Assembly: GCA_002269645.1 (NCBI GenBank) | Contig: NIVC01003396.1 | Coordinates: forward strand, 2,419 to 66,418 | DNA length: 64,000 bases | Origin: Macrostomum lignano | Taxonomy: Eukaryota | Direction: 5' to 3' | Translations under genes and position numbers: made by a program | Notes under the pieces: generated by a model | The model's input: only the letters and a program-made list of their open reading frames with translations | What the model was told of the DNA's origin: nothing | Databases searched by the model: none | Shown: piece by piece, positions 6,701 to 64,000 of the stretch | How positions within the stretch are numbered: position 1 is the first letter of the stretch | Layout of the letters: every line of letters starts with the position of its first letter

Positions 6701-9700
6701 AGATTTTATTTTGTGACAGCTAATTGTGAGGGATCCATGGATGCTTTTGGTTTAAGGGTGTGACAGAGTAGTGGCGCAAGGAGGACGTTACCAAATGTTG
6801 GGCAAAAATGATGTCATACAAGGAACGCTAGGTTGACGTCACTAAGGACAAGGATAATGCCAGTGAGGAGCCTCAGAATGACGTTTGAATGAAGGAGTGC
6901 TAGAGGGACGTCAGTAAGAAGTGCTGGAGTGACATCAGTAAGGAGTGCTATAGTAACGTCACTAAGGAGTGCTGGAGTGACGTCAGTAAGGAGTGCTAGT
7001 GTGACGTCAGTAAGGAGTGCTAGTGTGACGTCAGTAAGGAGTGCTAGTGTGACGTCAGTAAGGAGTGCTAGTGTGACGTCAGTGAGGAGTGCTAGTGTGA
7101 CGTCAGTAAGGAGTGCTAGTGTGACGTCAGTAAGGAGTGCTAGTGTGACGTCAGTAAGGAGTGCTAGAGTGACGTCACTAAGGAGTGCTAGAGGGACGTC
7201 AGTGAGAAGTGCTAGAGTGACGTCACTAAGGAGTGCTAGAGTGACGTCACTAAGGAGTGCTAGAGGGACGTCAGTGAGAAGTGCTAGAGTGACGTCACTA
7301 AGGAGTGCTAGAGTGACGTCAGTGAGAAGTGATAGAGTGACGTTAGTAAGAAGTGCTAGAGTAACGTCATTAAGGGGTGCTAGAGTAAGAAGTGACGCTA
7401 GTAAGTGACATTAGTAAGGAAGTAAGGAGGGCTAGAGTGACGTCAAGAAGCGCGAGAATGGTGTCAGTAAGGACAAGGAGCGCCAGGATGACTTCAGTAA
7501 AAAATTGGCTTCAGCAGCAACAGTGACAGTGGTGGGCTATTGGGCGGCAACTTCAGAGTAAACATTTTTCTTTCTCACTATTGATGCTTTTTAGAAAAGC
7601 GACTAATGGTTTTAACATGCACTTTCTTACTGAACTGCCACACAGCTTCCAGTAAAATCAAATTGGTACAAATCGCTCTCATCAATCACTTGAGAATAGT
7701 AGAGTTAGAGTTAAAGCAAGCTTGACATGGCAGCTGATTGGTTTTAGGGATAAGCTTTACGTTCTTTATATGTACGATATAAAGTGAGATGGTAGATAGG
7801 AGCAGCTTTTTTGAGACTTCGAGGTCCCCATGGGATCGAGCGGAGCTCAAACGAAATCCTAGTTAGTCAAAGATTTCCACACTTTTTACAATTGTTATTT
7901 ATGTACTCTAAAACTTTCAGGCTGGTTCGAAACAGTCAAAATCAAATAAAACATCAACATATCTTCCCTACCATTTACACTGAGTCTCTCTGACCTTAGC
8001 TTGTACAGAAGTTGCAGAAAGTCTGCAGACTTCATGTTTACAGCTTACTCAAATTTGGCACTCGATAAAGGTCGTGAAATTCCAAAAATCAAGAATCAAG
8101 TATCACATAACAAAACCAACCGTCTATAGTACCATATCTTAAATAGGCTTGCAGCAATCCTGTTTTGATGCCTTGACATAATGCTACAAGTTCACTTGTA
8201 CAGAATGCTCAGTAAATTCCCTACCAAATTTTTTTGAACTTCGCAGCTCATCACTGCAGCCAGTTTTGTCACGGGCAGCCTCACCGCATGCGGCTACTGC
8301 ATGTGCGAGCGCTCGTCAGTGTCCTGCGATTTCGGCTCAGTCCACGATCGAATCAAGCCAGGCTTCGATCTGTCGGATTTCATACCGAATGCGGACAGTC
8401 TCAAACGGGTCGGCGTTGACCCGTCCAACTTTGAGGATCTGTACGTGAATTGCAAGAACAGCCGAGCTCTGGTGAACCAGACTCTCTCTAGGGACATGCT
8501 GAGCCAGTTTTCCCGGCTCAAGTTGATCACCATCGTTCGGTGCGACCTAACCAGAATCGAGCCGGACGCATTCGAGGGACTCTACATTCTGGAAAAGTTC
8601 GACGCCAGCGACAACAACTTGGAGCTGCTGCCGCCAGCGCTGTTCGGCCAACGCACTCTGAGCATCCTGAAGCTCAGCGAGAACCCTCGGCTCCGCTTGG
8701 ATCCGCGGGTGTTTCGGGGTCTCACCCTCGAGCGTCTGGTGCTGTCGCGTTGTCAACTGACAGAGTTTCCTCTTGGCGCTCTGTTCCCTATTAGGGGACT
8801 TCGCGAGCTCACTTTGTCCGAGAATGAAATCCAATTGGTGCCCAGAGATGCTCAGGTGCTCATCGCCAATTTGACAATATTGTACTTGGACGGCAATCCG
8901 ATTGAGTGCACCTGCGCAAACAGGTGGCTTAGAGAATCAGTGGATTGGGCGAAGCTGTCACCGTCTGTTAGCAGGGTAAGTGAGGCTGACTTCGGAGCTA
9001 AGAAGCTGTCGGAAAATCAGTCATGTTGATCCACTGCTCAAGTCAAAGTGCTCCTGTGCTCAATTATAAAGCTCATCTTGCCCAATGTTATTCTCTGCTC
9101 TATCATCGTTCTCCTGTACTCAATCATCGTTCTCCTGTACTCAATAATCGTTCTCCTGTACTCAATCATCGTTCTCCTGTACTCAATAATCGTTCTCCTG
9201 TACTCAATCATCCAATGCTCCTGTACTCAATCATCGTTCTCCTGTACTCAATCATCGTGCTCCAGTACTCAATCATCGTGCTCCTGTACTCAACCATGGT
9301 GTATAGTATACTACTAGCAATCTTGCAAAACACCCGCAGATATCCAAGCTGCCCACCTGCAAGTCGCCATTCAGCCTGATGGACATCGAGCTCACCAAAG
9401 TTGAGCCGTCGAAATTTCTCTGCCCGCCGCCTCGGATCTCCGGCGTTGACCTTCGCATGTCCTCAGACTCCGCTCTGTTGGAGTGCTCAGCAGACGGCGA
9501 GGCCAGCCAGTCTTTAACAGCTCAGAGAATCGCCTGGTCCTACCGGAACTTGGCAATCTCCGAAGTCACTTTACCAGCTCCAAACGGTCCCCGATTCGTC
9601 AAGACGCTGCGCCGTCGTCCGGGCAGCTTGAAGGATCAGCTGATAGTGTACGCATCAGCAACTGACGGTCACTCCGCATCTATCAATGTCAGCCTGCGCT

Positions 9701-35543: not shown

Positions 35544-38500
35544 CTAGGCAACAAAGGCCGCTCTCTTGTGTCGCCTGCCTATCATCTCGCGGTCCATCAG
35601 TGCCTTTTTAGCCAAGTATTTTTGTCGTTTTATTTTGCGTTTCAAGTCTTCGGGAATGTTTGGTATAAACCAGTTCATCACACTGGTCAATAGGGTCACG
35701 ACTTGCTGCATGTGAAGATTTTTTGTGAGGTTTATATATTAGCTTCATTGGTTATACTCATTAATCTTGATACACATCTCTCTAGAATGTTTGGTCAGCC
35801 ACCACCACCTCACTCTGGATTGATTGGTCAGCCACCACCACCTCACTCTGGATTGATTGGTCAGCCACCACCACCTCACTCTGGATTGATTGGTCAGCCA
35901 CCACCACCTCACTCTGGATTGATTGGTCAGCCGCCACCACCTCACTCTGGATTGATTGGTCAGCCACCACCACCTCACTCTGGATTGATTGGTCAGCCAC
36001 CACCACCTCACTCTGGATTGATTGGTCAGCCACCACCACCTCACTCTGGATTGATTGGTCAGCCACCACCACCTCACTCTGGATTGATTGGTCAGCCACC
36101 ACCACCTCACTCTGGATTGATTGGTCAGCCACCACCAACCTCACTCTGGATTGATTGGTCAGCCACCACCACCTCACTCTGGATTGATTGGTCAGCCACC
36201 ACCACCTCACTCTGGATTGATTGGTCAGCCACCACCACCTCACTCTGGATTGATTGGTCAGCCGCCACCACCTCACTCTGGATTGATTGGTCAGCCACCA
36301 CCACCTCACTCTGGATTGATTGGTCAGCCACCACCACCTCACTCTGGATTGATTGGTCAGCCACCACCACCTCACTCTGGATTGATTGGTCAGCCGCCAC
36401 CACCTCACTCTGGATTGATTGGTCAGCCACCACCACCTCACTCTGGATTGATTGGTCAGCCGCCACCACCTCACTCTGGATTGATTGGTCAGCCGCCACC
36501 ACCTCACTCTGGATTTATTGGTCAGCCACCACCACCTCACTCTGGATTGATTGGTCAGCCACCACCACCTCACTCTGGATTGATTGGTCAGCCGCCACCA
36601 CCTCACTCTGGATTAATTGGTCAGCCACCACCACCTCACTCTGGATTGATTGGTCAGCCACCACCACCTCACTCTGGATTGATTGGTCAGCCGCTACCAC
36701 CTCAATCTGGATTGATTGGTCAGCCACCACCACCTCACTCTGGATTGATTGGTCAGCCGCCACCACCTCACTCTGGATTGATTGGTCAGCCACCACCACC
36801 TCACTCTGGATTAATTGGTCAGCCACCACCACCTCACTCTGGATTGATTGGTCAGCCACCACCACCTCACTCTGGATTGATTGGTCAGCCGCCACCACCT
36901 CACTCTGGATTGATTGGTCAGCCACCACCACCTCACTCTGGATTGATTGGTCAGCCACCACCACCTCACTCTGGATTCGTAAATAAAGCCTGCATAATCT
37001 CTCACCTGAAAGAACAGCATATAAACAATTCTGATAGCCTGCAGTTTCCAGTAGTACTCGGTGTTATTCGGTATCATGTTAAACCGACACGGCTCAGACG
37101 TTGTGTTTGCTTGAGCCCAGCTCAGGGTGTAATTCTTGAAGCCCAAGTCACCCCCGTAAACAGGTCTGAAGACGCTGATAGCTAACGACTCTGATGTGAA
37201 TGCCATCAGAGAACCCTGAAACGGGGACGAGTGAATGAAGGCATAGCAAACTGCACGCATGTCTTTTGCAGTTGTCCAATGTGGATTCACGAGTGTTATT
37301 CAAGCTGACGATATTATAAAATGCTTCCAGAACCCGGCAATAAAGCAAAGTTTCCGGCGGAATTCCGTTATGACAAGGCAACTGTATTAATAGTCTTCCT
37401 TTCCCAGGTTAATTGGAAAACCTCAACCTACTTGCAAAATGTGAACCCTCAAACTTTACGTTTAAATTGCCGTCTCGCAGTTTAGTGTGAAAACATCGAT
37501 AACCAGTCTCTTTCTAACGCATGAAAAGTTTTCTCAAGGGCGTTGCAGGCACCCCAGTGAAACGTCTTCAACGACATCGTCCCGCAACCAGCTCTGACGG
37601 TGATTCTGCCCATTCCGCTGACTCCTGAGCACATGCAAGCGCGCCAATACTGTACGCAGGCTGGCACTCATACACACGCTCACACAGGGTGTACAGCAGC
37701 GGCCCTTTGACTTTCTAAGTGCACTTTGCATGTGCACTCTCTGTGCCCTGGTGGTTGGCCTCCATGGCTGTAAATCGCACGACAACTTTCCTCAGGTCAA
37801 ACTCTGGTGCACGCAAGAAGCCCCAAATGAATGTAGGAATCTAACCAGGGAACGTAGCGCGAGAGTCGGACGCGCTCACTACTGAGCCTGCCCTATATTG
37901 TGCCTTGAGCCTTGAGCCTTGAGTCTGACTGCATTGCCCGACATTGATTACTCTTCAAAACTCACATTAGAAATAACCGCCACGTGAGCCACAAATTTCA
38001 TCATTGAGAACCAAATCCCGATGCTCTGAGCTCGCTCTGGCAGAGGCCGTCGAGTGCCGATTACCAGCTTCCTGGCGTCAAGGCGGATCTCAACCAAATT
38101 GTTGATGAGCGCGAACAGTGGCGCCAACGGGAAGGCCGGCACAAACAAGGTGACAAAGCCGAACTGCATGATGAGCTCTAAGTAGTCCATGAACAGACCA
38201 GTGTCGTACGGAATCAGCATGTAGTCAGCGTCCCACGACTGGCTGGCGTTTGGCAGCTGGTTTGCTTGCAGGCCGGTAGAGCCGATGTGGAGGAATGTAA
38301 GCAGCTTTCTAGAAAGAAAATATTATAAAGTAATTGGGTCAGAACCACACAGTGTGAGCTTTGAAGATTCAAGATTTCAAGCTTAACAACTGCAACCTGT
38401 GTCTTAAGATACTTCCCAATGCTAAACTAAACAATTGTTTCAGTTTCAGTAGTTAGCGGTAGGGGGCTGTTGTGCACCCTGGCGCACTTTAAGCGACATT

Positions 38501-41500
38501 GTCGCACAACCGGCGAGAGGCATTACTGCCCATTCCACCGACTCCCCTGAGCAGGCACACAAGCGCGCGGATACGTACGCAGGCACACACTCACACAGGA
38601 GTGTACAGCGGCCCTAACTTTATTTTATCGTTAGGCATGTACACTTCACTGCGCCTTGGGGGGTTGGCTCTCAATGCCGTTAATCGCACGAGCAGAGCCA
38701 AGCCGAGATTCCAATTCAGCCCCAAATTAATGTGACTGCATTTGGAATCGAGTCTGGGCCGCTGGCATACCAGAGCGCCGCTCCAGACCACTGGGCTATG
38801 GTAAAAACTTACGGGATCAACATTTCAATAATCTGCACGGCAACCTGCTTGCCAATCAGAATGATGGCCATCAGTTGGGTCAGCTCGAACATGCAGCTGC
38901 CGTTGATGCAGTCGGCCAAGCGACTTCCGAACAGCTCATTGTATTTTCCTGGCTCTCCCACCACGCTGCAATTTATGAATTTTATGCTCACTCGCGAGTA
39001 AATTAGTGATTGAAAATCCAGTACAAGATCCAATTATAAGTGCAGTCACTCACTTTCCTTTGATGAAAGCAATGTACGAAATTGACAAGTAGTGGTTGAA
39101 TATTTCAAAGACGAACACCTTGAATATTACTTGGTTCTCGAATTGAGTCTGCGTTCGATGCATCTCTGCAAAAGCGGTAAAAGTGAATTTGCACTGCATG
39201 AGTTTCGAGGAGGCAGGCAGGCAGGCGGACCCACTCCGCTGACACTCAATCTACAGAGGGTGCACAGCGGACCCTGACCTTCAGCATCGTCAGTTAGTGT
39301 ACACACCCTGTGCCTTTGGCCTGCATCGCACAATCTCTAAAGTCCAATCTTTGTTAGAATCAGGAGCGTCAACCACCCTGCCCTCCAAAACAAACATAAA
39401 TCAGTAGCCTTTACCCCATTCAGTGATATTAAAAGCAATCTTTTCATAAATCAGCTCCAACGCCAGAACGATGATCAAATTGACGCAAGCTGATGACGCG
39501 TTTGCCAGCGTGACGGCGCGAGAACGGACGAGTTTGTTATTAAACAGCGCATGCAGAATCGATGACCGCGTCATCAGCATTGCGATTAGACTGGCTGTTG
39601 ATAGTATCATCTGGAATATTTGTTGTTGACAGATAATTGCAGATATGATAGCAAATTTCAGACACCTTTGATCTACCGCCACTCTGTCTAGACTCTTTGA
39701 TCTACCTCGTCCGCCATTCTGTACTCTTTGATGCACCGCTGCACTCTGCACTGACTCTTTGATCTACCGCCACTCTGTATACAGACTCTTTGATCTACCG
39801 CCACTCTGTATACAGACTCTTTGATCTACCGCCACTCTGTATACAGACTCTTTGATCTACCGCCACTCTGTATACAGACTCTTTGATCTACCGCCACTCT
39901 GTATACAGACTCTTTGATCTACCGCCACTCTGTATACAGACTCTTTGATCTACCGCCACTCTGTATACAGACTCTTTGATCTACCGCCACTCTGTATACA
40001 GACTCTTTGATCTACCGCCACTCTGTATACAGACTCTTTGATCTACCGCCACTCTGTATACAGACTCTTTGATCTACCGCCACTCTGTATACAGACTCTT
40101 TGATCTACCGCCACTCTGTATACAGACTCTTTGATCTACCGCCACTCTGTATACAGACTATTTGATCTACCGCCACTCTGTATACAGACTATTTGATCTA
40201 CCGCCACTCTGTATACAGACTCTTTGATCTACCGCCACTCTGTATACAGACTCTTTGATCTGGCCCCACTCTGCACTGTATTGACTCATCAAAACTTCCA
40301 AATAAAGCCAGCTTACTCACCATTACCATCAGACTCAACACTCCAATCAGTATTCGGAGTCGCCTTTTAGAAGATGGAAAATGCGGCTCCATATTTCCCG
40401 TTATCGGATCCTCCTCGTACTCGGTGCATCTGGACGCGTACTCGGGCCTCGGCCGCTCCTCCATCTCAACGTAATCCAACACATCCCATTGGTAAGCCAG
40501 TCTGGCCGTTTTGCGTTTCCAGAATTTCAGGAATCCGTACGCTTTACGGGTGAGGTTTGGATAATGTAAAATTTAGTCTTCATTATCACAGAAAAATCAA
40601 AAAGTTCTCTTTTTTGACTAAAAATTCCATTTGAAAAACAGCGGCAGCATAGTGAAAAATTAACATAATAATTTCACCTTAACTCAGTCGGGACCAGTCA
40701 AAAAAGATCTCTATGTCTAATTAGAAAACTAATCCCCGATCAACAAATCCCCAATCAACCACTCCCCAATCAACCACTCCCCAATCAACCACTCCCCAAT
40801 CAACCACTCCCCAATCAACCACTCCCCAATCAACCACTCCCCAATCAACCACTCCCCAATCAACCACTCCCCAATCAACCACTCCCCAATCAACCACTCC
40901 CCAATCAACCACTCCCCAATCAACCACTCCCCAATCAACCACTCCCCAATCAACCACTCCCCAATCAACCACTCCCCAATCAACCCCTCCCCAAACAACC
41001 CCTCCCCAATCAACCACTCCCCAATCAACCACTCCCCAATCAACCACTCCCCAAACAAACCATCTCAAATCAACCCATCCCAAAACTCACCCCAGACGGA
41101 CACGAAAATGGCGTAGAAATGCGTTGCAACATTGTCGAATACGTAAGAAGCTCGAATGTACGTGCAAATGTCACTCAAGTACCAGTAGTTGCAGGCCTGT
41201 ATATTCTCGCATAGAGGGCACATTTTGAAGTATTTTTTACTGCCGCAAATTTCGTGTCTGAAAATCGAGTGGTCGGAGATAATTGATAAAGCTAGTAATT
41301 CACCATTCAATTAATCAGGTCACTAATCTACCGGCCACGTCACTCAATCTGCAATCTAATCAGGTCACTAATCTACCGGCCACGTAGATTACAAACAGAA
41401 TTGGAGAATTCTATAGACTCTACATTCGTGTGCGTACTCATAACTAAAAAAACTATTAAACTTCTGCTTACGCAACCGTGCTTTTGTTGATAGTGCCAAT

Positions 41501-44007
41501 TCCATACAGAAATGTAACCATTCCGACCAGAGTTGCAGGTACGAGCCACATTGTGTAGTAACCTATAATGCATATAAATATTTCAAATTAAATTTCCCAT
41601 GAAAATCATCACCGCTAATCTTATGAAAGCTTTAAAGTGAGTAGAAACGATTTAAGAGAGAATTTAAATTACCGATAAAGGCAAAATAAAATGCAATTTT
41701 CTCGCCAAAATAGTCGCGAATGTGATCGAGCGGTTGAAACTTGTACCAGAGCTTCCAGCGGGCCCAGTAATTGTGCAGTAGCTGACGCGCGTTCATCTGC
41801 TCGGGTCTCAGGCCTGCCGGGGTGCTTGACGAGCCCTGAATTATTGTCCACAGTTTTAAACGGTCATTGCTCAATTACGTTGACCCCTGAGCACACACAA
41901 GGAAAAACAAGCAGACACGCTCTCGCACAGGGTGTACCGCGGCTCTGACCTCCTCATCGTCGTCAGGCCTGTACATGTACACACAGCGGTGTCTAGGGAT
42001 TTGGGCCCTCATAGGCGCATTGAACCCGTGCTGGGTTCAACTCGCTAGAATAAGACGCTTTATAACCACTGAGCTCAAAGTAAGGACAGTTAAAGTATTT
42101 TATAATTTTTTACATGATTAAAGTATGTTTTACTGCCTATAGCTGCACTTACCTCATGCGGTGGATAGGCGCAGGAGTAGATACCTCTCCTGATCATGCT
42201 GTCCAGACCGACCTCGGACTGGTCTTTCTTACCGTAGATTTGTGTGCCCAGCAGCTCGAAAGCCACTTCGAAGCGTTGCGTCGGCCTAAAGTAGGTATCC
42301 TTGTTACTGATGCCGATGTACCTTAAGGTTAAATTTGGAGTCGTTGGAGAGCGTACGGGGTGAAAATTTGCTATGCGCAAACAGTATAATAATAGTCTCG
42401 AGGCGCTAATTTATTGTTAATAAAAACGACGACTGCGACTCACTTTGTAGCTTTATCAGCCGAGAACGCGCAAGTGTAGAATTGCTTCTGTTTGCTCATA
42501 CTCTTTGCTTCCAACGGACTGCTGAACAATTCGCTGGATCTCGAACGACTGAAAAATGACGAAGATCTTTCCGAGCCGTCGTCGCGGTTTTCCACTTCCT
42601 AAACAGATCCAAAATGAAAAGTTAACGATAGTAGTAAATAGAATGATGAATAAAAAGCGTTCGAATAGGAAGATTCTCACCTCCAGAGGCGCCCGAAAGC
42701 CAAGATATTCAGCGTAGTAGCACATTGTTGTCCAAGAGACAAACAGTTTTACAAAATGGATCTTTTTCTTCGAACTAATACAGGTCTCCTACAGATCAGA
42801 TATTGTTGTTTTATTTGGTATTATTACATTGAAATGTTTAAATAAAAACGAATGTTCTAACAAACCCGTTCAATCTCGACGCCAACTTCGATAAGATTGT
42901 CCTCGAATTTCTTTCTATGCATCGCCGCTTTCTTTGAAAAATAATCTTCTGTGTCTCTCAAGTCTTCCTCCCAGACAAGGACGTAGTCTAAAGCAAAGTG
43001 GGCTAATATTTTATTCTTTGCGATTTGTTCATAATTTGATTCAGAATCGTTTAAAGTGCAACCAAAAATATGCTCGTGAGTCGTGCGTACATAGGTACCG
43101 GTAAATGTTATGCTGAAACACAGTTTTACACGTGAACTTACCGACTCTACGAATTCCGTCCCTGAAAAAGCAAGTCTTTATTGATTCTCTAGGCGGCGGT
43201 TCACTGTCATTTGTTGCTTCACTGGGAGGCTTTGGCTTGGATGCAGCATTTGTTGGTTGCTTAGTAGGTACAGAGATAGTTGGTTGCTGAGTGGGTGCAG
43301 CATTGGTTGGTTGCGGAACTAGCTTAGCTTGAGGTAACTGTCGAGTCGAAGAAAAGATCGCTTGTTGCTGCGGCGATACGGCTTGAGGTGATTTCTTGGT
43401 TGGCGTGAACTGACTTGTTTGCTGAGGTGAAGTAGTTTGTGGCGACTGTGGGGTCGAAGGAAACTTTTTCGGTAGCTGCGCTGATGTGACTTGTGGTTGT
43501 GGCGATGACTGAGTTGAAGTTGCAGTAGCCGAAGGCGGCTGCCGAGTCGAAGGGAATGTCGCGGGTTGCTTTGCGAATGTTGCTGGTGGTGCAGATTGCC
43601 GAGTGGGGGAGAGTTTACTCTGTTGCCAAGACAATTTCGCTGGCTGATATGGTGATACGGCTTGCGGCGATTTCTGAGTCGCAGGGTATTTTCTTGGTTG
43701 CTGTGGTGTCTTAGAAAACTGAGATAACTGCTGCTGTTGACCGATCGGGGCTTGCTGCTTAGGCGAGGCGTTCTTTGAAGGCTGCTTGGCTGAGCCGAAC
43801 TTTCCTGGCTGCAAAGTTTGGGTCAATGAGACTTTTGCATATTTCAATGTAGAATGGAAAGCCTATTGAGTATTGTCATGATCGACTTGCGATTTCAATT
43901 TAAATCGAATTTGAATCGATTCTAATTAGTAGAAAACATCACTCGGGTGGGAGCACTACAAAACAACTTACCGACGCATTTCTGTCAGCGTTCGTCCCCT
44001 TTCGCAT
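35544..44007 (-). CDS. ANO: Anoctamin/TMEM16 family protein, copy A, 1024 aa, 16 exons, intact
   Basis: Exons (+ coordinates): 43972-44007, 43142-43808, 42866-42987, 42681-42788, 42444-42598, 42153-42321, 41673-41835, 41472-41562, 41091-41257, 40321-40541, 39415-39610, 39054-39165, 38813-38965, 37966-38308, 37006-37215, 35544-35705. Sum 3075 nt, all GT-AG, phases compatible. Motifs: [92 protein letters not shown], PNIP. The symbol is family-level only. Confidence 0.95.
35790..36975. repeat. 33-bp minisatellite (GGATTGATTGGTCAGCCACCACCACCTCACTCT)n
   Basis: About 36 units filling the last intron of anoctamin A. Confidence 0.97.
37535..37893 (-). mobile_element. tRNA-derived SINE-like element, near full length
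   Basis: The - strand begins with A-box-like GGCTCAGTAGT and B-box-like GGTTAGATTCC. The body GCCGCTG..TACACCCTGTGTGAG..CCTGCGTACAGTATTGGCGCGCTTG..GTGCTCAGGAGT.AGCGGAATGGGCAGAAT is shared with other copies. Confidence 0.7.
38460..38802 (-). mobile_element. tRNA-derived SINE-like element, same family
   Basis: A-box TAGCCCAGTGG, B-box-like GACTCGATTCC, shared body and 3' tail (GGGTGCACAACAGCCC versus GGGTGCCTGCAACGCCC in the 37535 copy). Confidence 0.7.
39200..39345 (-). mobile_element. Degenerate SINE family fragment
   Basis: CCCACTCCGCTGAC..GGGTGCACAGCGGACCCTGACC..CATCGTC..TGTACACACCCTGTGCC resembles the other copies. Confidence 0.45.
39660..40260. repeat. 31-bp minisatellite (CTTTGATCTACCGCCACTCTGTATACAGACT)n
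   Basis: Anoctamin A intron. Confidence 0.97.
40735..41065. repeat. 15-bp minisatellite (CCCCAATCAACCACT)n
   Basis: Anoctamin A intron. Confidence 0.97.
41875..42075 (-). mobile_element. tRNA-derived SINE-like element, 3'-truncated
   Basis: GAGCTCAGTGG A-box, GGGTTCAATGC B-box, body GCCGCGGTACACCCTGTGCGAG..GTGTGTGCTCAGGGG. Confidence 0.62.
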
Positions 44008-46600: not shown

Positions 46601-57464
<10,864 letters not shown>

Positions 57465-59317
57465 TTAATTATTTTTGTTATTAACTAGCAGTGACATGCG
57501 ACGTTGGAAATCGCTTCTTTTTTCTTTGTGTACTGGCTTTAAAGCATGCTTCAATTTTTGTCGATTTTCAATTTTTTCTTGTGAGCAAAACGTGCTCTAG
57601 CAGACGATCTCATCTATTTTTTAGGCGGCTAATCACTCATAGGCACAATGATGCAGCGTTATCAAGGACATAGTTTTTGTCTATGGTGTGAAATGCTTTT
57701 AAGAGAATGGTGAAGGACAAAGATATGCTGGAACTTTTTATTTATATTAAAAAAGTGGCAATGTTTCAGCACTCATGCACTTGCAGATGCCGAGGGTCAC
57801 GGACGATTAATTGCTGAGATGGATGCTGTTATCTTATGCTGATATCTTAGGCTAAAAACCTGAGGCGCTTAGGCCTGACGCTGTTTTGCATTAAACACAA
57901 TTTTCTTTAGGAAACTAACGGTATTGTGCACAAGGCTTTCTGCACGTATCGTTTGTTAGGAAATTTCTGTTTCTTTTGTTGCCTCCCCAACGGGGGGCAT
58001 AGCTAGTCCACTATACTAAAAATGATTGGTTTCATTAAGTGCAAACAAGTCGACAATTTACTATCTAGCGATTGCATGCTTCTTTAATAATGGCTTTTTC
58101 TGATAGTAAATGCAAAAAGAATATCCAAAAAACTTAAAAATTCCTGAATTTATCTCCAAATGCATTAAATTCAATTTTTTTAAGCAAAATAAAAACAAAA
58201 ACCGTTCACTTGAAAAAAACAGCAGATTTAAATGATATATTGCTTGCTGACAGTGACAATGCTGATACTGTAGGCATGTAAGTCAGAAAAAATTCTATTA
58301 AATTCTAAATTATATGAGAAAAGTCCGATTTCAATTATGGTAAAGATTTTTATAAAGCTGCCGAATCTTCGCATACAATGTCTGAACTGTCTGACGCTCT
58401 TCTTTGACGCACTACGTTCGAATTAACTCGATTATGCGAACGCAAAAGCCTCTGCATGCTGCGCTGTTGCGGTCGTTCTTGTTGCTGATTTTCTTCTGTC
58501 TGCTGCTGCTGTTGTTGCTGTTGATTTTGAATTAGTAATTGACTCCGCCGATTATAACGCTGCTGCATCACTTGCTGGCGCAACTCAGCGTCCACGAGAG
58601 CTTGCCGGCCAAGATAGTTCTGACGCTCGATTCGTTCGACCAGTTTCTTGGGCACTCTTGGGATGAAAATCAGTACGAGCCTTCGCAGTGAGAATACCAA
58701 GTGCTGTAAAGGGTGTGTGCAGGTGCTTTTGTAAGCGCGTAAATTAAATAGAATCGGTGAATATTGATATCACAACATGCCGAAGTTGTAGCTCAACTCA
58801 CGCAGCTTGTTGGTAAGTACGAATACCGCATATTTCAAATCATTGTGCAACCAAACTGATACTTTCAAGGCGAGTGAACGTCCTACCCGATTGCTACCAA
58901 TAACTGACATGGAATGTAAAATTACATGGCACGACGAAAGCTCGTAAGATGATCCACTTTCCATGAGTTAGCTCGTAGATGGAAAGTCATGGTGCAAAGG
59001 TAAAGCACGCACGCATAGCCTACCAAACAAAAAGTAAATAAAAAAATGAATTAAACTTGCCTCGAATACAATTACAAAAGATAGCCGAACTACCAGCAGT
59101 TTCCAGTAGAATGGAGTCAAATTTCCCGAACTGTCTCGATAGTTTCTGTACCGACACGGCTGCGATGTGGTGTTCGGCGGCGACCAAGCCAGCGAGAAGT
59201 TGGTGAAGCCGTGTGTATCTGAACTGTGATCAATTTTGTGCAGCATCCTGGCCAAGAAGTCCGACGTGAAGGCTATCAGAAAGCCCTGCATTGCAGTTGC
59301 GCTTCAAGTGTTAGCCA

Positions 59318-59932
59318 ATAGTTGAAAACGGTTCCCAGGCCAAGAAGCGTCCTGGAGTTGCTTGCGTCGACCCAGATTCGTTTCAGAGTCGTTGCAGGTA
59401 ACATTGGTAGAACAGGAAAGAAGTGACTCTAGACGATTCTAAAACGACTAGATGTCACACTACGAGCGTAAAAGTCGCCAAAAAATCGTCAAAGAGTTTT
59501 TCAGTGTCAATTTGAAGCGTTATATTTTTCTGCGACTCTGAAACGACTTTGGGGCAACGCAAATGACTCTGGGACCGTAGAGTCGTATCTGAGACGTGCG
59601 AGAGTCGCTGTAGAATCATTATGTTGCGTCGAAAGTGCATCTACGCTCGTACGTCACTTTATGAATTCGAATCACTCTTTGAATTATAACAACTCTATTT
59701 AGTCTACTTGAATTGTTAGAGTTGAATGATGGCACGACTCTAGACAACTTTTCGCGACTCTTTACGATTCTGCAGTTCTTGAGATGACTCAAAAGTCGCT
59801 TCATCATTGTATTACAGTCGTTTAAGTTGTTAAAAAGTCACAAGAGTCGCTAGTAGAGTCACCAAAGTTGCTAGAATAAGTTGTTTACCATGGCTCTTCA
59901 GCGATTATTGTCACGGTAACATTTTCAAAGGG
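59318..59932. mobile_element. Second, longer copy of the same TIR element
   Basis: Shares AGAGTC.TTGCAG.TAA..GAAG(T)ACTCTAGAC.A.TCTAAAACGACT.GATGTCAC and TTAAAAAGTCACAAGAGTCGC..GCGATT.TTGTCACGGTAACATTTT.AA.GGG with 50956-51396. Confidence 0.7.
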
Positions 59933-61009
59933 TACCGTTCTATTCATTTGGCATTATATCTACCGTCCTATCCTACCCTTTCAAAAAGCACTCTATTCGA
60001 CTGTTGTAAAAGAAATCCTGCACTAATGATAGATTGTGTATTTTGGTTTTGGAGGTAGACAATGATTAATTTCAATGTCTTCCTAATGAAACAAAACTTT
60101 GAACAACCCGGGTAAAAATCATCATTTTAAGTTCAGCTGATCCGAAATAGCAATTTGAAGTATAGCTTCAAAACAAGCAAGTGAGCCTTAAAATAATTCT
60201 GCAATATTTCAGTGTGCTACGTCCAGAAACAAAGACACTTCTAGTGGTTCTTAGAAAATACATTTACTTACATTAGATATAACGGACACCACCGCTATAA
60301 CGTCAAGCAGGCTGGACCACATGCCAATGCCTTGGAACTGCAAAGACAGCGGTCGGCGAGTATCCTCAATCAGTCGTTTGGCAATGATTCGAAGGGCGAG
60401 GATATTGTTGAGAAGGGCGAACAGCGGAGCCAGTGGAAAAGCGGCTACAAAAATGGTTGCAAAACCAAATTACAGCACCAGCTGCAAAAAGTCGTTCCAC
60501 AAGCCTTCGAAACTTAACAGGCAGTAGTCCGCCTCCCACGGTTTCAACTTTTGTCCGTTCAATAGCGTCGTTGAAAAACCGGTACGAATGCCTTGTATAT
60601 AGATCTTAATTCTTCTGCAGATGAACAAGGTGATTATGTATACTCGTAGCATGGGGTTATAGATCATAGCAAAGATACTAAAATCGACAAAATGACCAAC
60701 TTACGGCAGGATTAGATCAATGCAATTGCTGAGCGCCTGTCTGCCTATCATAATAATAGCAAGGGTGAGCGTCAGATCTAATAAACAGCCACCTTCATCG
60801 CACTCCTCTGGCCGGTAGCCAAGCAGGGAGTTGTAGTGTCCTGGGTAGCCGGAAAATCTAAAATTGGTGGCATTCGAGGCAGCGTTGCGATGGTAACTTG
60901 AGAAATTTCGGTTTTTGACGATGAACTCGAGGTTCGATAGGAGTATCGTGTAGCATTAATTTTGAGTAGCTATTTACAAGCGTATGATCAAGTTAACATA
61001 AGGAGAGGA

Positions 61010-61195
61010 AAGATGAGGGAGAAGAGAGGAGAGATGAAAAGAGGGAGATGAGAGAGGAGAGAGGAGAGAGGAGAGAGGAGAGAGGAGAGAGGAGAGATGA
61101 GAAAGGAGAGAGGAGAGAGGAGAAAGGAGAGGGGAGAGAGGAGAGAGGAGAGATGAGAAAGGAGAGAGGAGAGAGGAGAGAGGAGATTCGACTAG
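61010..61195. repeat. Purine-rich (GAGAG)n low-complexity tract
   Basis: Anoctamin C intron. Confidence 0.9.
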
Positions 61196-62034
61196 AGAGC
61201 TGAGAAGAGACGCACACCTTAAGCGGGCCGGATTGCTATTGTGAAGTTTGAAAGGACCTCCGGGGGGGGGGGGCGGAGGTCGCCATCCCCTGCTGTAATA
61301 AATGGGGACAGCTGGGCAAACCAATGAGAAAGGATTCGAACTGATTAGAATTCGTTATCATCATCAGACTAACCTGCCTTTGAAGAACGCAATATAGAAT
61401 ATTGACGAATAATAGTTCCAAATCTCAAAGATAAATATCTTCATTGTAACCTGATCGTCAAATTCCCATTGCGTTTTGTGCGCCTCTGAAATCGGATTAA
61501 CAAATTCAATTCAAAAATTGAATTAGTATATCTTTTGAAAATTATACATCACGATTCGAGGCCGTTGCTTGCCCCATTCTGTCAGTCGGTAGGCCAGCTG
61601 CTTGTACAAAACTTCCAGGGCCAGCATCAGCAGCAGATGCAGCAGAGCGCCCAAGGCGTTAGCGACTGCCCGAGCTGTCGTGAGTAGCGCCGGCACGCGA
61701 ATCAGGTACACAATGACGCTCGATTGAAAAGTGATTACGAACAGGATGAAGACGATCACTATGGCGAGCTGAAGTTGAATTTCGATAGAATAATATTAGC
61801 CTTCCTTTTTCCTGTTGAGATTGGCCTTGTTTTAAATTCCCACATGCCTCTCGCTCGTTCTGATGCAAACCGCATAAATCTCAAGTTTTCATAGGTTTCC
61901 GTTAAAAATGTCTGTCTGCTTAAAGTAACTTAAACTATGGAACCTTTTTTGCCAGCGGATTTGGCGCCCCCCCCCCCTGCACAACAGCTGGGGCGCCCCT
62001 GCCTTGGCGCGGTCCCCTAACATGTAATTTGGCG

Positions 62035-62450
62035 TTGGTGCTGGCGCCCCTGGTGCTGGCGCCCTGGTGCTGGCGCCCCTGGTGCTGGCGCCCCTGGTGC
62101 TGGCGCCCCTGGTGCTGGCGCCCCTGGTGCTGGCGCCCCTGGTGCTGGCGCCCCTGGTGCTGGCGCCCCTGGTGCTGGCGCCCCTGGTGCTGGCGCCCCT
62201 GGTGCTGGCGCCCCTGGTGCTGGCGCCCCTGGTGCTGGCGCCCCTGGTGCTGGCGCCCCTGGTGCTGGCGCCCCTGGTGCTGGCGCCCCTGGTGCTGGCG
62301 CCCCTGGTGCTGGCGCCCCTGGTGCTGGCGCCCCTGGTGCTGGCGCCCCTGGTGCTGGCGCCCCTGGTGCTGGCGCCCCTGGTGCTGGCGCTCCTGGTGC
62401 TGGCGCTCCTGGTGCTGGCGCCCCTGGTGCTAAAGCTCCTGGTGCTGGAG
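62035..62450. repeat. 15-bp minisatellite (GGTGCTGGCGCCCCT)n
   Basis: Anoctamin C intron; shares the GGCGCCCCT core with the 20-bp arrays. Confidence 0.97.
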
Positions 62451-62774
62451 CCTCGGGTACTAAATAAGCAACCAGAAAAAGCCTACCATAAAAAGCAGAC
62501 AAATGTAGCTGCAAATAATTCTAGGCAGTCGTCGAGTGGAAGGAAAATGCGGCTCAATGATGCCAGTGATGGGGTTCCGTCTGTGCTGGTCGCATCGCGC
62601 GGCGAAGCCGGGCCGGGGCCGGCTGATCTCAACACGATAGTTGCTCACGCCCCAGCGATGGCGAGAGTGGCGGTGCGACGCTTCCAGAACTCCAGGAAGA
62701 TCAGAGCTGATTGAGTTTAAGTATAGAATTAATTTAATACCGGTTTAATTCTCATTTACTTCGCTGCAGTCTAA

Positions 62775-63180
62775 TGTCACTGACAGTCAAATGTCACTGA
62801 CAGTCAAATGTCACTGACAGTCAAATGTCACTGATAGTCAAATATCACTGATAGTCAAATGTCACTGACAGTCAAATGTCACTGATAGTCAAATGTCACT
62901 GACAGTCAAATATCACTGATAGTCAAATATCACTGATAGTCAAATGTCACTGACAGTCAAATGTCACTGATAGTCAAATGTCACTGACAGTCAAATATCA
63001 CTGATAGTCAAATATCACTGATAGTCAAATGTCACTGACAGTCAAATGTCACTGATAGTCAAATGTCACTGACAGTCAAATATCACTGATAGTCAAATAT
63101 CACTGATAGTCAAATGTCACTGACAGTCAAATGTCACTGATAGTCAAATGTCACTGACAGTCAAATGTCACTGACAGTCA
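62775..63180. repeat. 17-bp minisatellite (TCACTGACAGTCAAATG)n
   Basis: Anoctamin C intron. Confidence 0.96.
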
Positions 63181-64000
63181 AATTTCGTTGACCCTCACAC
63201 TTTAGTGCCAATAATCTGTTACTCGTAAGTCGTATTTACAATTGATCGCCCAGTATTTATATCAAACCACTAAGTCTTTGTTGAAGCGTTTGTTACATGT
63301 AAGTCCATCGATTTAAGGCTAATAAAATAACGTTTGAGCTCACACCAGATCGACATGAAGACAGCGTAAAACACGGTGCCATAATTGTCGAAAACGGCCG
63401 CCAACTTCAGTTTCCAGCAGATGTCGCTCAAATACCAAAACGGGCAGCCGTCGGCCTCGTCGCAGAATGGGCACATTTTGAATTCCTTTCCAGCCTTGCA
63501 GGTGTCCCGGCTGCAATTGGAAAAATCGTTAAACAAATGCGAACTACGCGAGCTATTATCGAGTTTTATGCAAACAGCAAATCACCTCACTTGGCAGCAT
63601 TGAATGGCAGCGATGCCAGACCGTAAACAAAAACGAAGACACCAACTAGGGTAGCCGGGGCAAGCCAAGTTGTGTAGAAACCTTGAAAATTAGATTAACA
63701 GTAGGAACACCAAGCCATTTTTCCGCCCGTCGAACTACCAAGGGGGGGGGAATTCCCCCCCTGACAATTTTTTTGCTGCGCCGGAACGGAGCAACGCAGG
63801 CACACGAAATTCAAGAACACGGGCTAACTTTTTGTTGCGCACCTTCTCAAACAAGAATCAAGTCGCCAGCCCTTCGGACCGTCGAGATATTCGACGATTC
63901 TGCCAGAAGTCGGATTTTTCCCATAAGCGCCAGTGTATTCAGTTCACCCCTGTGCGCCAATCAGCACTGCGCCTCAGTGCAGCCCTGCCAAGTCTCCAAA

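Follow-up and report, generated by a model that had tools for sequence, protein, structure and literature searches.

The stretch of DNA analyzed here (the window) comprises 64,000 nucleotides of Macrostomum lignano contig NIVC01003396.1 (assembly Mlig_3_7), which it matches at 100% over contig positions 2419 to 66418, and contains three anoctamin paralogs arranged in tandem on the minus strand, which were located by tblastn with the conceptual protein of the third copy and are designated A (∼35.5 to 43 kb), B (∼46.6 to 56 kb), and C (58.35 to 63.68 kb). The interval under study, 60272 to 60857, comprises two minus-strand exons of copy C, and the surrounding DNA is eukaryotic, with short GT-AG introns. 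Exon-by-exon alignment to an intact homeologous gene (C') delimited exons 7 to 15 of the 15 exons of copy C, from TM1 to the C terminus, at 58350 to 63681 (minus strand); window position 64000 is the end of the contig, so that exons 1 to 6 of C fall outside the window. Paralog B (46601 to 56111, minus strand) has an intact ORF over exons 2 to 15, shares its intron positions and phases with C, and is covered in part (46601 to 52104) by the GenBank model Mlig001965g3. The ORF of paralog A (35544 to 42987, minus strand) is likewise intact over exons 2 to 15. Minisatellite arrays occupy at least nine introns of A, B, and C (window 35000 to 63200), with units of 7 to 40 bp, up to 110 copies, and lengths that differ between the homeologous loci; examples lie at 62767 to 63183, 62036 to 62452, 61003 to 61186, 52839 to 54590, 47142 to 48848, 39666 to 40273, and 35773 to 36977. 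A leucine-rich-repeat ORF on the plus strand at 8301 to 9029 (Pfam LRR_8, E = 3e-23) is unrelated to the anoctamin genes.

Both its closest relatives and its tree position identify C as a member of ANO7/TMEM16G. The best database match is M. lignano PAA80633.1 (904 amino acids, 98% identity), which is the protein of C', and the remaining 119 top matches are ANO7-like throughout, at no more than 51% identity. The Pfam Anoctamin domain (PF04547) scores 422.9 bits in the conceptual translation of window copy C and 465.8 bits in C' (cutoff, 28), while the dimerization domain PF16178 (Anoct_dimer) is intact in C' at 170 bits. These are the only Pfam families found in C and C', which places both outside OSCA/TMEM63/TMC. 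A neighbor-joining tree puts A, B, and C inside the flatworm ANO7 proteins, a placement in which long-branch attraction is possible. Mutual identity within the tandem cluster is 43 to 58%, and the whole cluster is fast-evolving. A 2022 preprint (10.1101/2022.04.22.489151) lists PAA80631, PAA80632, and PAA80633 as tandem TMEM16G genes of M. lignano and does not comment on their ligands; the locus name Mlig004871 gave no match in the literature. The protein search with paralog B returned B and its homeolog B' only, with no A- or B-type protein from other species. UniProt entry A0A1I8I5H4 (2,505 amino acids) is a fused gene model, which presents C', B', a non-anoctamin stretch that looks retroelement-like by eye, and A' as one "anoctamin."

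M. lignano is a hidden tetraploid (PMC5704211, PMC10733133), and the homeologous locus is colinear with the window at 92 to 95% nucleotide identity, introns included. A Ks figure was not found in the MBE paper on the M. lignano subgenomes. The C' gene, on contig NIVC01000572.1, has 15 exons with canonical splice sites and an uninterrupted ORF of 904 codons that translates exactly to PAA80633.1. The GenBank annotation was made from RNA-seq and transcript assemblies, with only coding transcripts retained (PMC5730564), and C' has indirect transcript support because the annotation was built in this way. The protein collection yielded no C-type transcript or protein fragment beyond the two database models of C', so that the expression of C' rests on how the annotation was constructed. 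An AF2 model of C', used for fold confirmation only, reached a pLDDT of 82 and a pTM of 0.80, with TMEM16F and TMEM16A as the best PDB matches (TM-scores, 0.81 to 0.86). Structure modeling, which the earlier note had suggested as a check, thus gives a confident TMEM16 fold; its ten helices and N-terminal dimerization domain were judged on C', as the window lacks the N-terminal exons.

All nine exons of C in the window retain their splice sites. They encode, on the minus strand, TM1 (exon 7, 63591 to 63681, with AG acceptor and GT donor kept), the extracellular Cys-rich loop and the start of TM2 (exon 8, 63344 to 63510), TM2 (exon 9, 62487 to 62706), TM3-TM4 (exon 10, 61573 to 61768), TM5 (exon 11, 61374 to 61485), TM6 (exon 12, 60705 to 60857), TM7-TM8 (exon 13, 60272 to 60614), TM9 with an extracellular loop (exon 14, 59061 to 59285), and TM10 with a Gln-rich tail and the stop codon (exon 15, 58350 to 58703). 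The introns after exons 10 and 14 are of the GC-AG type, with GCAAG donors (61571 to 61572 and 59059 to 59060, minus strand) that are common to C and its homeolog; A and B have GT at these places.

The reading frame across these conserved exons is interrupted in the window copy by two lesions. Exon 9 measures 220 nt versus 221 nt in C', A, and B, with a 1-bp deletion at 62660 to 62661 (minus strand; CC versus CCC in the homeolog, CTCGCC-ATCGC), and a TGA follows five codons on in the shifted frame. Between TM7 and TM8, exon 13 carries an in-frame TAA at 60470 to 60472 (minus strand), where the homeolog has CAA and where Gln is invariant in 119/119 ANO7-like proteins. Bypass of this TAA by readthrough or splicing was considered and rejected, because no in-frame donor/acceptor pair surrounds it and because the frameshift in exon 9 already truncates the protein. 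In addition, the two loci cease to be similar at 63698, which lies 17 bp upstream of exon 7; the 302 bp from there to the contig end (63699 to 64000) show no similarity to homeolog intron 6 and may represent an insertion, a rearrangement, an assembly break, or a chimeric contig end. The GenBank annotation of the contig calls genes for A and B and none over C exons 10 to 15. The earlier note had only hinted at damage, by speaking of a "repaired ORF," and its treatment of the window copy as a working gene does not hold in view of the frameshift, the nonsense codon, the homology lost upstream of exon 7, and the exons that carry no gene model. As the assembly is PacBio-based and the exon 9 frameshift falls in a short run of C, this lesion could be an assembly error; for the exon 13 nonsense codon, a substitution, an error is less likely. 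The window copy thus appears to be the losing homeolog, either disabled recently or mis-assembled, and the candidate site-less protein is really PAA80633.1, encoded on another contig.

The residues in question map without ambiguity onto mouse TMEM16A (phmmer E = 5e-105 to 5e-107, with TM7-TM8 gap-free), and the peptides and codon coordinates quoted in the earlier note are all exact on the minus strand. TM6 of C reads GRQALSNCID (60745 to 60716), TM7 reads WNDFLQLVL (60499 to 60473) versus FMDYLELIM in A and FWEYLEAVM in B, and TM8 reads NNILALRIIAKRL (60409 to 60371), where A and B share one 13-residue string. With the orthosteric ligands in mTMEM16A ac numbering, exon 12 encodes Ser at the N650 position (60730 to 60728), Asn at N651 (60727 to 60725), and Asp at E654 (GAT, 60718 to 60716), and exon 13 encodes Asp at E702 (GAC, 60493 to 60491), Gln at E705 (CAG, 60484 to 60482), Asn at N730 (AAT, 60406 to 60404), Ala at E734 (GCC, 60397 to 60395), and Ile at D738 (ATT, 60385 to 60383). 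The reading of C as E654->D, E702->D, E705->Q, E734->A, and D738->I is therefore confirmed. The five acidic TM6-TM8 ligands are D/D/Q/A/I in C and D/D/H/A/I in C', versus E/E/E/E/D in 119/119 other ANO7-like proteins across Metazoa, and E734 and D738 are also invariant in 120 further fragments retrieved with a short TM6-TM8 query. Asn is retained at N651 and N730, and the Ser at N650 is a variant seen in 20/119 relatives as well. The one ligand position at which the homeologs differ, E705, accounts for one of only eight amino acid differences in the core; the window copy has CAG (Gln) there and C' has CAT (His, residue 642), with GAG>CAG>CAT as the likely path.

The losses extend beyond the orthosteric site. 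In the third Ca2+ site between TM2 and TM10 (E425, K428, D879, and D884 in a-isoform numbering), C and C' carry E, K, L, and R, while Asp is found at D879 in 114/119 relatives and at D884 in 118/119. Two of the three acidic residues of this site are lost in C, D879 to Leu (CTG, 58673 to 58671, exon 15) and D884 to Arg (AGA, 58658 to 58656, exon 15); the Glu and Lys in exon 9 are kept (FLEFWKRR). The pore Arg equivalent to R515 of mTMEM16A is Gln in C, as had been noted before (CAA, 61726 to 61724, in the motif TFQ of exon 10), versus 117 Arg and 2 Lys among the 119 relatives. C retains the hinge Gly and Q646, the two Asn ligands, and the majority of the groove-helix residues. Among the neighbors, B keeps all five acidic ligands, with the TM6 hinge Gly replaced by Phe and K645 by Asn, and A has the ligand set E/D/E/E/D, with E702->D and a third site altered to K/N/N (E425->K, D879->N, D884->N); N651 is Gln in both.

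Such changes could be one aspect of a general degeneration of the gene. Across the 93 columns that are invariant in the 119 relatives, C' has changes at 16 (C at 16 to 17), A at 18, and B at 20; C, A, and B are, respectively, 51%, 50%, and 49% identical to the canonical paralog. The earlier view that much of C is more canonical than A or B holds only marginally. All five acidic ligands are among the 16 changed invariant columns of C' (hypergeometric P = 8e-5), versus one in A, which is conservative, and none in B. The loss in C is specific to the Ca2+ sites, because C as a whole is no more degenerate than its neighbors and the ligands are concentrated among its changes. Protein-level selection had earlier been argued from codons, in part on the grounds that E->A and D->I need 2 to 3 base changes each; this count is too high, since the minimum is 1 for E->A and 2 for D->I. 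Taken at every known site, the residues suggest that the C type has lost Ca2+ regulation.

Selection was estimated between homeologs only, as A, B, C, and canonical ANO7 are 43 to 51% identical and their synonymous sites are saturated. Over 617 aligned codons, C and C' differ by 28 synonymous and 14 nonsynonymous changes, plus the nonsense codon and the frameshift. The Nei-Gojobori method gave a dS of 0.067, a dN of 0.010, and an omega of 0.15 for exons 7 to 15, and a dS of 0.072, a dN of 0.0065, and an omega of 0.09 for the membrane core, where omega is a pairwise average over C and C' and does not tell which copy carries the constraint. For B and B', the same exons gave a dS of 0.067, a dN of 0.0054, and an omega of 0.08. 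The departure from neutrality is pronounced (binomial P, about 4e-9 overall and about 5e-11 in the core): a window copy that had evolved neutrally from the split onward should have collected ∼48 nonsynonymous changes on its own branch, versus the 14 observed on both branches. The earlier note had named a dN/dS of ∼1 across C as the mark of neutral decay, and the values found, low overall and in the core, resemble that of intact B. Intron divergence between C and C' is 0.060, equal to dS. Gene conversion as the source of the low dN was rejected on this ground, as conversion would have lowered dS equally. Protein-level selection, which had been preferred to long random decay before any of these estimates, is thus borne out by omega and by the agreement of dS with intron divergence. 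The Gln-rich C-terminal tail (58350 to 58560) is unlike the constrained core, with 6 nonsynonymous changes and 1 synonymous change between the homeologs (dS, 0.023; dN, 0.035; omega, about 1.5; Nei-Gojobori). The core itself shows 8 to 9 amino acid differences between C and C', most of them at variable columns, which are not polarizable with two copies.

These data also bear on the order of events. The site losses are common to C and C', with the exception of the E705 position, which indicates that the substitutions, the E705 state excepted, predate the split of the homeologous loci. The low omega between C and C' implies that the lesions of the window copy are either very recent or assembly errors. 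For almost the entire period after the duplication, ordinary purifying selection acted on the C-type protein, whose ligands had already gone. As a gene type, C combines this selection with an intact copy whose annotation was built from transcripts.

We propose the following account. Within a tandem cluster of three fast-evolving ANO7-like (TMEM16G) paralogs in the neopolyploid M. lignano, the C type would have shed its orthosteric ligands, three of them giving way to Gln/His, Ala, and Ile and two Glu being shortened to Asp, along with the outer-pore Arg (to Gln) and, in the TM2-TM10 site, two of three acidic residues (to Leu and Arg), while keeping the TMEM16 fold and the bulk of the remaining invariant residues. 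Since the losses would predate the homeolog split and strong purifying selection followed it, the C type would encode a working protein, presumably a TMEM16 scramblase or channel without Ca2+ dependence that is constitutive, as IST2 of Saccharomyces cerevisiae is, or gated otherwise. The window copy would then have gained its frameshift and nonsense codon, and perhaps a 5' break, while C' remained intact. This account as a whole, with a constrained Ca2+-independent C type, a recently lost window copy, and an intact C', is the one we favor, with moderate confidence. By analogy with TMEM16A, C' is not expected to respond to Ca2+ through any known site, because TMEM16A ligand mutants lose Ca2+ binding or sensing: E701K/D734R (a-isoform numbering, equivalent to E705/D738) abolishes orthosteric Ca2+ binding, and D879A/D884A abolishes third-site sensing (PMC7786149).

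A different function would suit the same constraint. The C type may be selected for the TMEM16 fold without transport, as a structural or tethering protein or as a regulatory heterodimer partner of A, B, or canonical ANO7, in which case the missing Ca2+ sites and pore Arg would mirror the complete disappearance of gating and permeation. The three Ca2+ sites have gone together with the conserved outer-pore Arg, the PF16178 dimerization domain is intact in C', and purifying selection tells that the protein matters and not what it does. However, the retained hinge Gly, Q646, Asn ligands, and groove-helix residues fit poorly with a protein that no longer transports, IST2 is a site-less TMEM16 and yet an active scramblase, and nothing here points to heterodimers. 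We regard a role of this kind as credible but unlikely.

Alternatively, the window copy may be intact in the animal, with the frameshift and the stop codon both being assembly or consensus errors and both homeologs functional. An omega as low as that of the intact neighbor B, the retention of every splice site, and the position of the deletion in a homopolymer of a long-read assembly would agree with this. It would, however, require two independent errors, one of them a C-to-T-type substitution, in an assembly that was evaluated with Illumina libraries, and it leaves aside the homology break 17 bp upstream of exon 7 and the transcript-based annotation, which has A and B on the contig and nothing over C exons 10 to 15. 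We therefore hold the integrity of the window copy to be doubtful.

It is also conceivable that the C type is still regulated by a cation through a remodeled site, in which the Asp of TM6, the Asp of TM7, the two Asn, and the His or Gln form a low-affinity Ca2+ site, a site for another metal, or a proton sensor. Two carboxylates survive together with two Asn, and the intact copy acquired a His at E705; these residues (Asp at the E654 and E702 positions, the two Asn, and His/Gln) might bind a cation weakly. Against this, Ala and Ile are incapable of acting as ligands, and a passage of PMC7786149 that cites Yu 2012 and Tien 2014 gives E705, E734, and D738 as each required for Ca2+ activation of TMEM16A. 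Moreover, the two homeologs carry different residues at E705, a hint of relaxed constraint rather than of a new one, and we consider such regulation improbable. Decay of the whole C lineage as a pseudogene, with the Ca2+-site changes as neutral decay, could call on the two lesions of the window copy, the C-type relatives not found elsewhere, and the tail omega of about 1.5, but is strongly disfavored by the core omega and its departure from neutrality, the uninterrupted 15-exon ORF and canonical splice sites of C', the confident TMEM16 model, and the clustering of changes on ligands rather than their even spread.

Returning to the constrained, Ca2+-independent C type, a more specific proposal can be put forward, tentatively and as a possibility short of a probable one: PAA80633.1 may be the first animal TMEM16 that works without any of the three Ca2+ sites, as a constitutive scramblase or channel or as one gated by another signal, e.g., protons or a transition metal via the His at E705, and it may derive from tandem ANO7 duplication in the Macrostomum lineage. 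Searches with the full core and with the TM6-TM8 exons alone detected the C type in no species other than M. lignano, whose homeolog cluster was the only C-type match; the TM6-TM8 query returned nothing but short fragments, and E734 and D738 were intact in every one of them. Our literature search found no paper describing an animal anoctamin without the Ca2+ site. PAA80633.1 is, however, already in the databases and listed as TMEM16G, and the IST2 precedent lowers the novelty of the finding.

TMEM16 proteins are functionally defined by Ca2+ activation. If the favored account is true, Metazoa, too, can dispense with Ca2+ control, as happened in the IST2 of Saccharomycetaceae, but by a different route that involves no Ca2+-mimicking Lys, and the C type would offer, alongside yeast IST2, a natural experiment in how the TMEM16 gate is uncoupled from Ca2+. 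The practical value is limited, as the C type is known from M. lignano alone, the window copy is probably dead, and the function of ANO7 is poorly defined.

Among known systems, the nearest relatives of C are the ANO7/TMEM16G proteins of molluscs, annelids, arthropods, and vertebrates and the three canonical paralogs of M. lignano, which share its Anoctamin and Anoct_dimer domains. C is 43 to 51% identical to these canonical proteins, which are 60 to 86% identical among themselves, and it differs from them at all five acidic ligands, the pore Arg, and two third-site Asp residues. Mouse TMEM16A (5OYB, 6BGI) and TMEM16F (6QP6) match the sequence of C over TM1 to TM10 (E = 1e-100 to 1e-107), and the predicted structure of C' superposes on them at TM-scores of 0.81 to 0.86; unlike TMEM16A and TMEM16F, C lacks most of the residues that hold the pair of orthosteric Ca2+ ions and the ion at the third site. 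At the level of the locus, the pattern is that of homeolog loss after the M. lignano whole-genome duplication, with two colinear loci at ∼6% divergence, one disabled and one intact, an outcome that is usual for redundant duplicates.

For the mechanism, OSCA, TMEM63, and TMC belong to the same superfamily as TMEM16 and function without the TM6-8 Ca2+ site, and they had been named at the outset as the comparator. C is unambiguously an anoctamin by its Pfam content (PF04547 and PF16178 only) and shows no signs of mechanosensitivity, and IST2 is the better comparator. This TMEM16 homolog of S. cerevisiae is a constitutively active, Ca2+-independent scramblase of the ER. Three of its five acidic ligand positions are substituted, each of them in alpha7/alpha8, and a Lys at the E506/E705 position forms a salt bridge to the alpha6 Glu and the alpha8 Asp, both of which are retained, and thereby mimics Ca2+ (PMC12618243). 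Like IST2, C has three alpha7/alpha8 acidic ligands substituted (E705, E734, and D738), although the set of positions is not identical, as IST2 keeps the alpha8 Asp. Unlike IST2, C and C' have Gln and His rather than Lys at E705, and the alpha8 Asp is replaced by Ile, so that the Ca2+-mimicking Lys has no counterpart. The lineages and tails differ as well: IST2 is a member of the fungal, TMEM16H/K-like branch and has a long tail that serves as a tether, whereas C derives from animal ANO7 and has a Gln-rich tail of ∼90 residues. Within these differences, IST2 provides, by analogy, the best working model for what C' may do.
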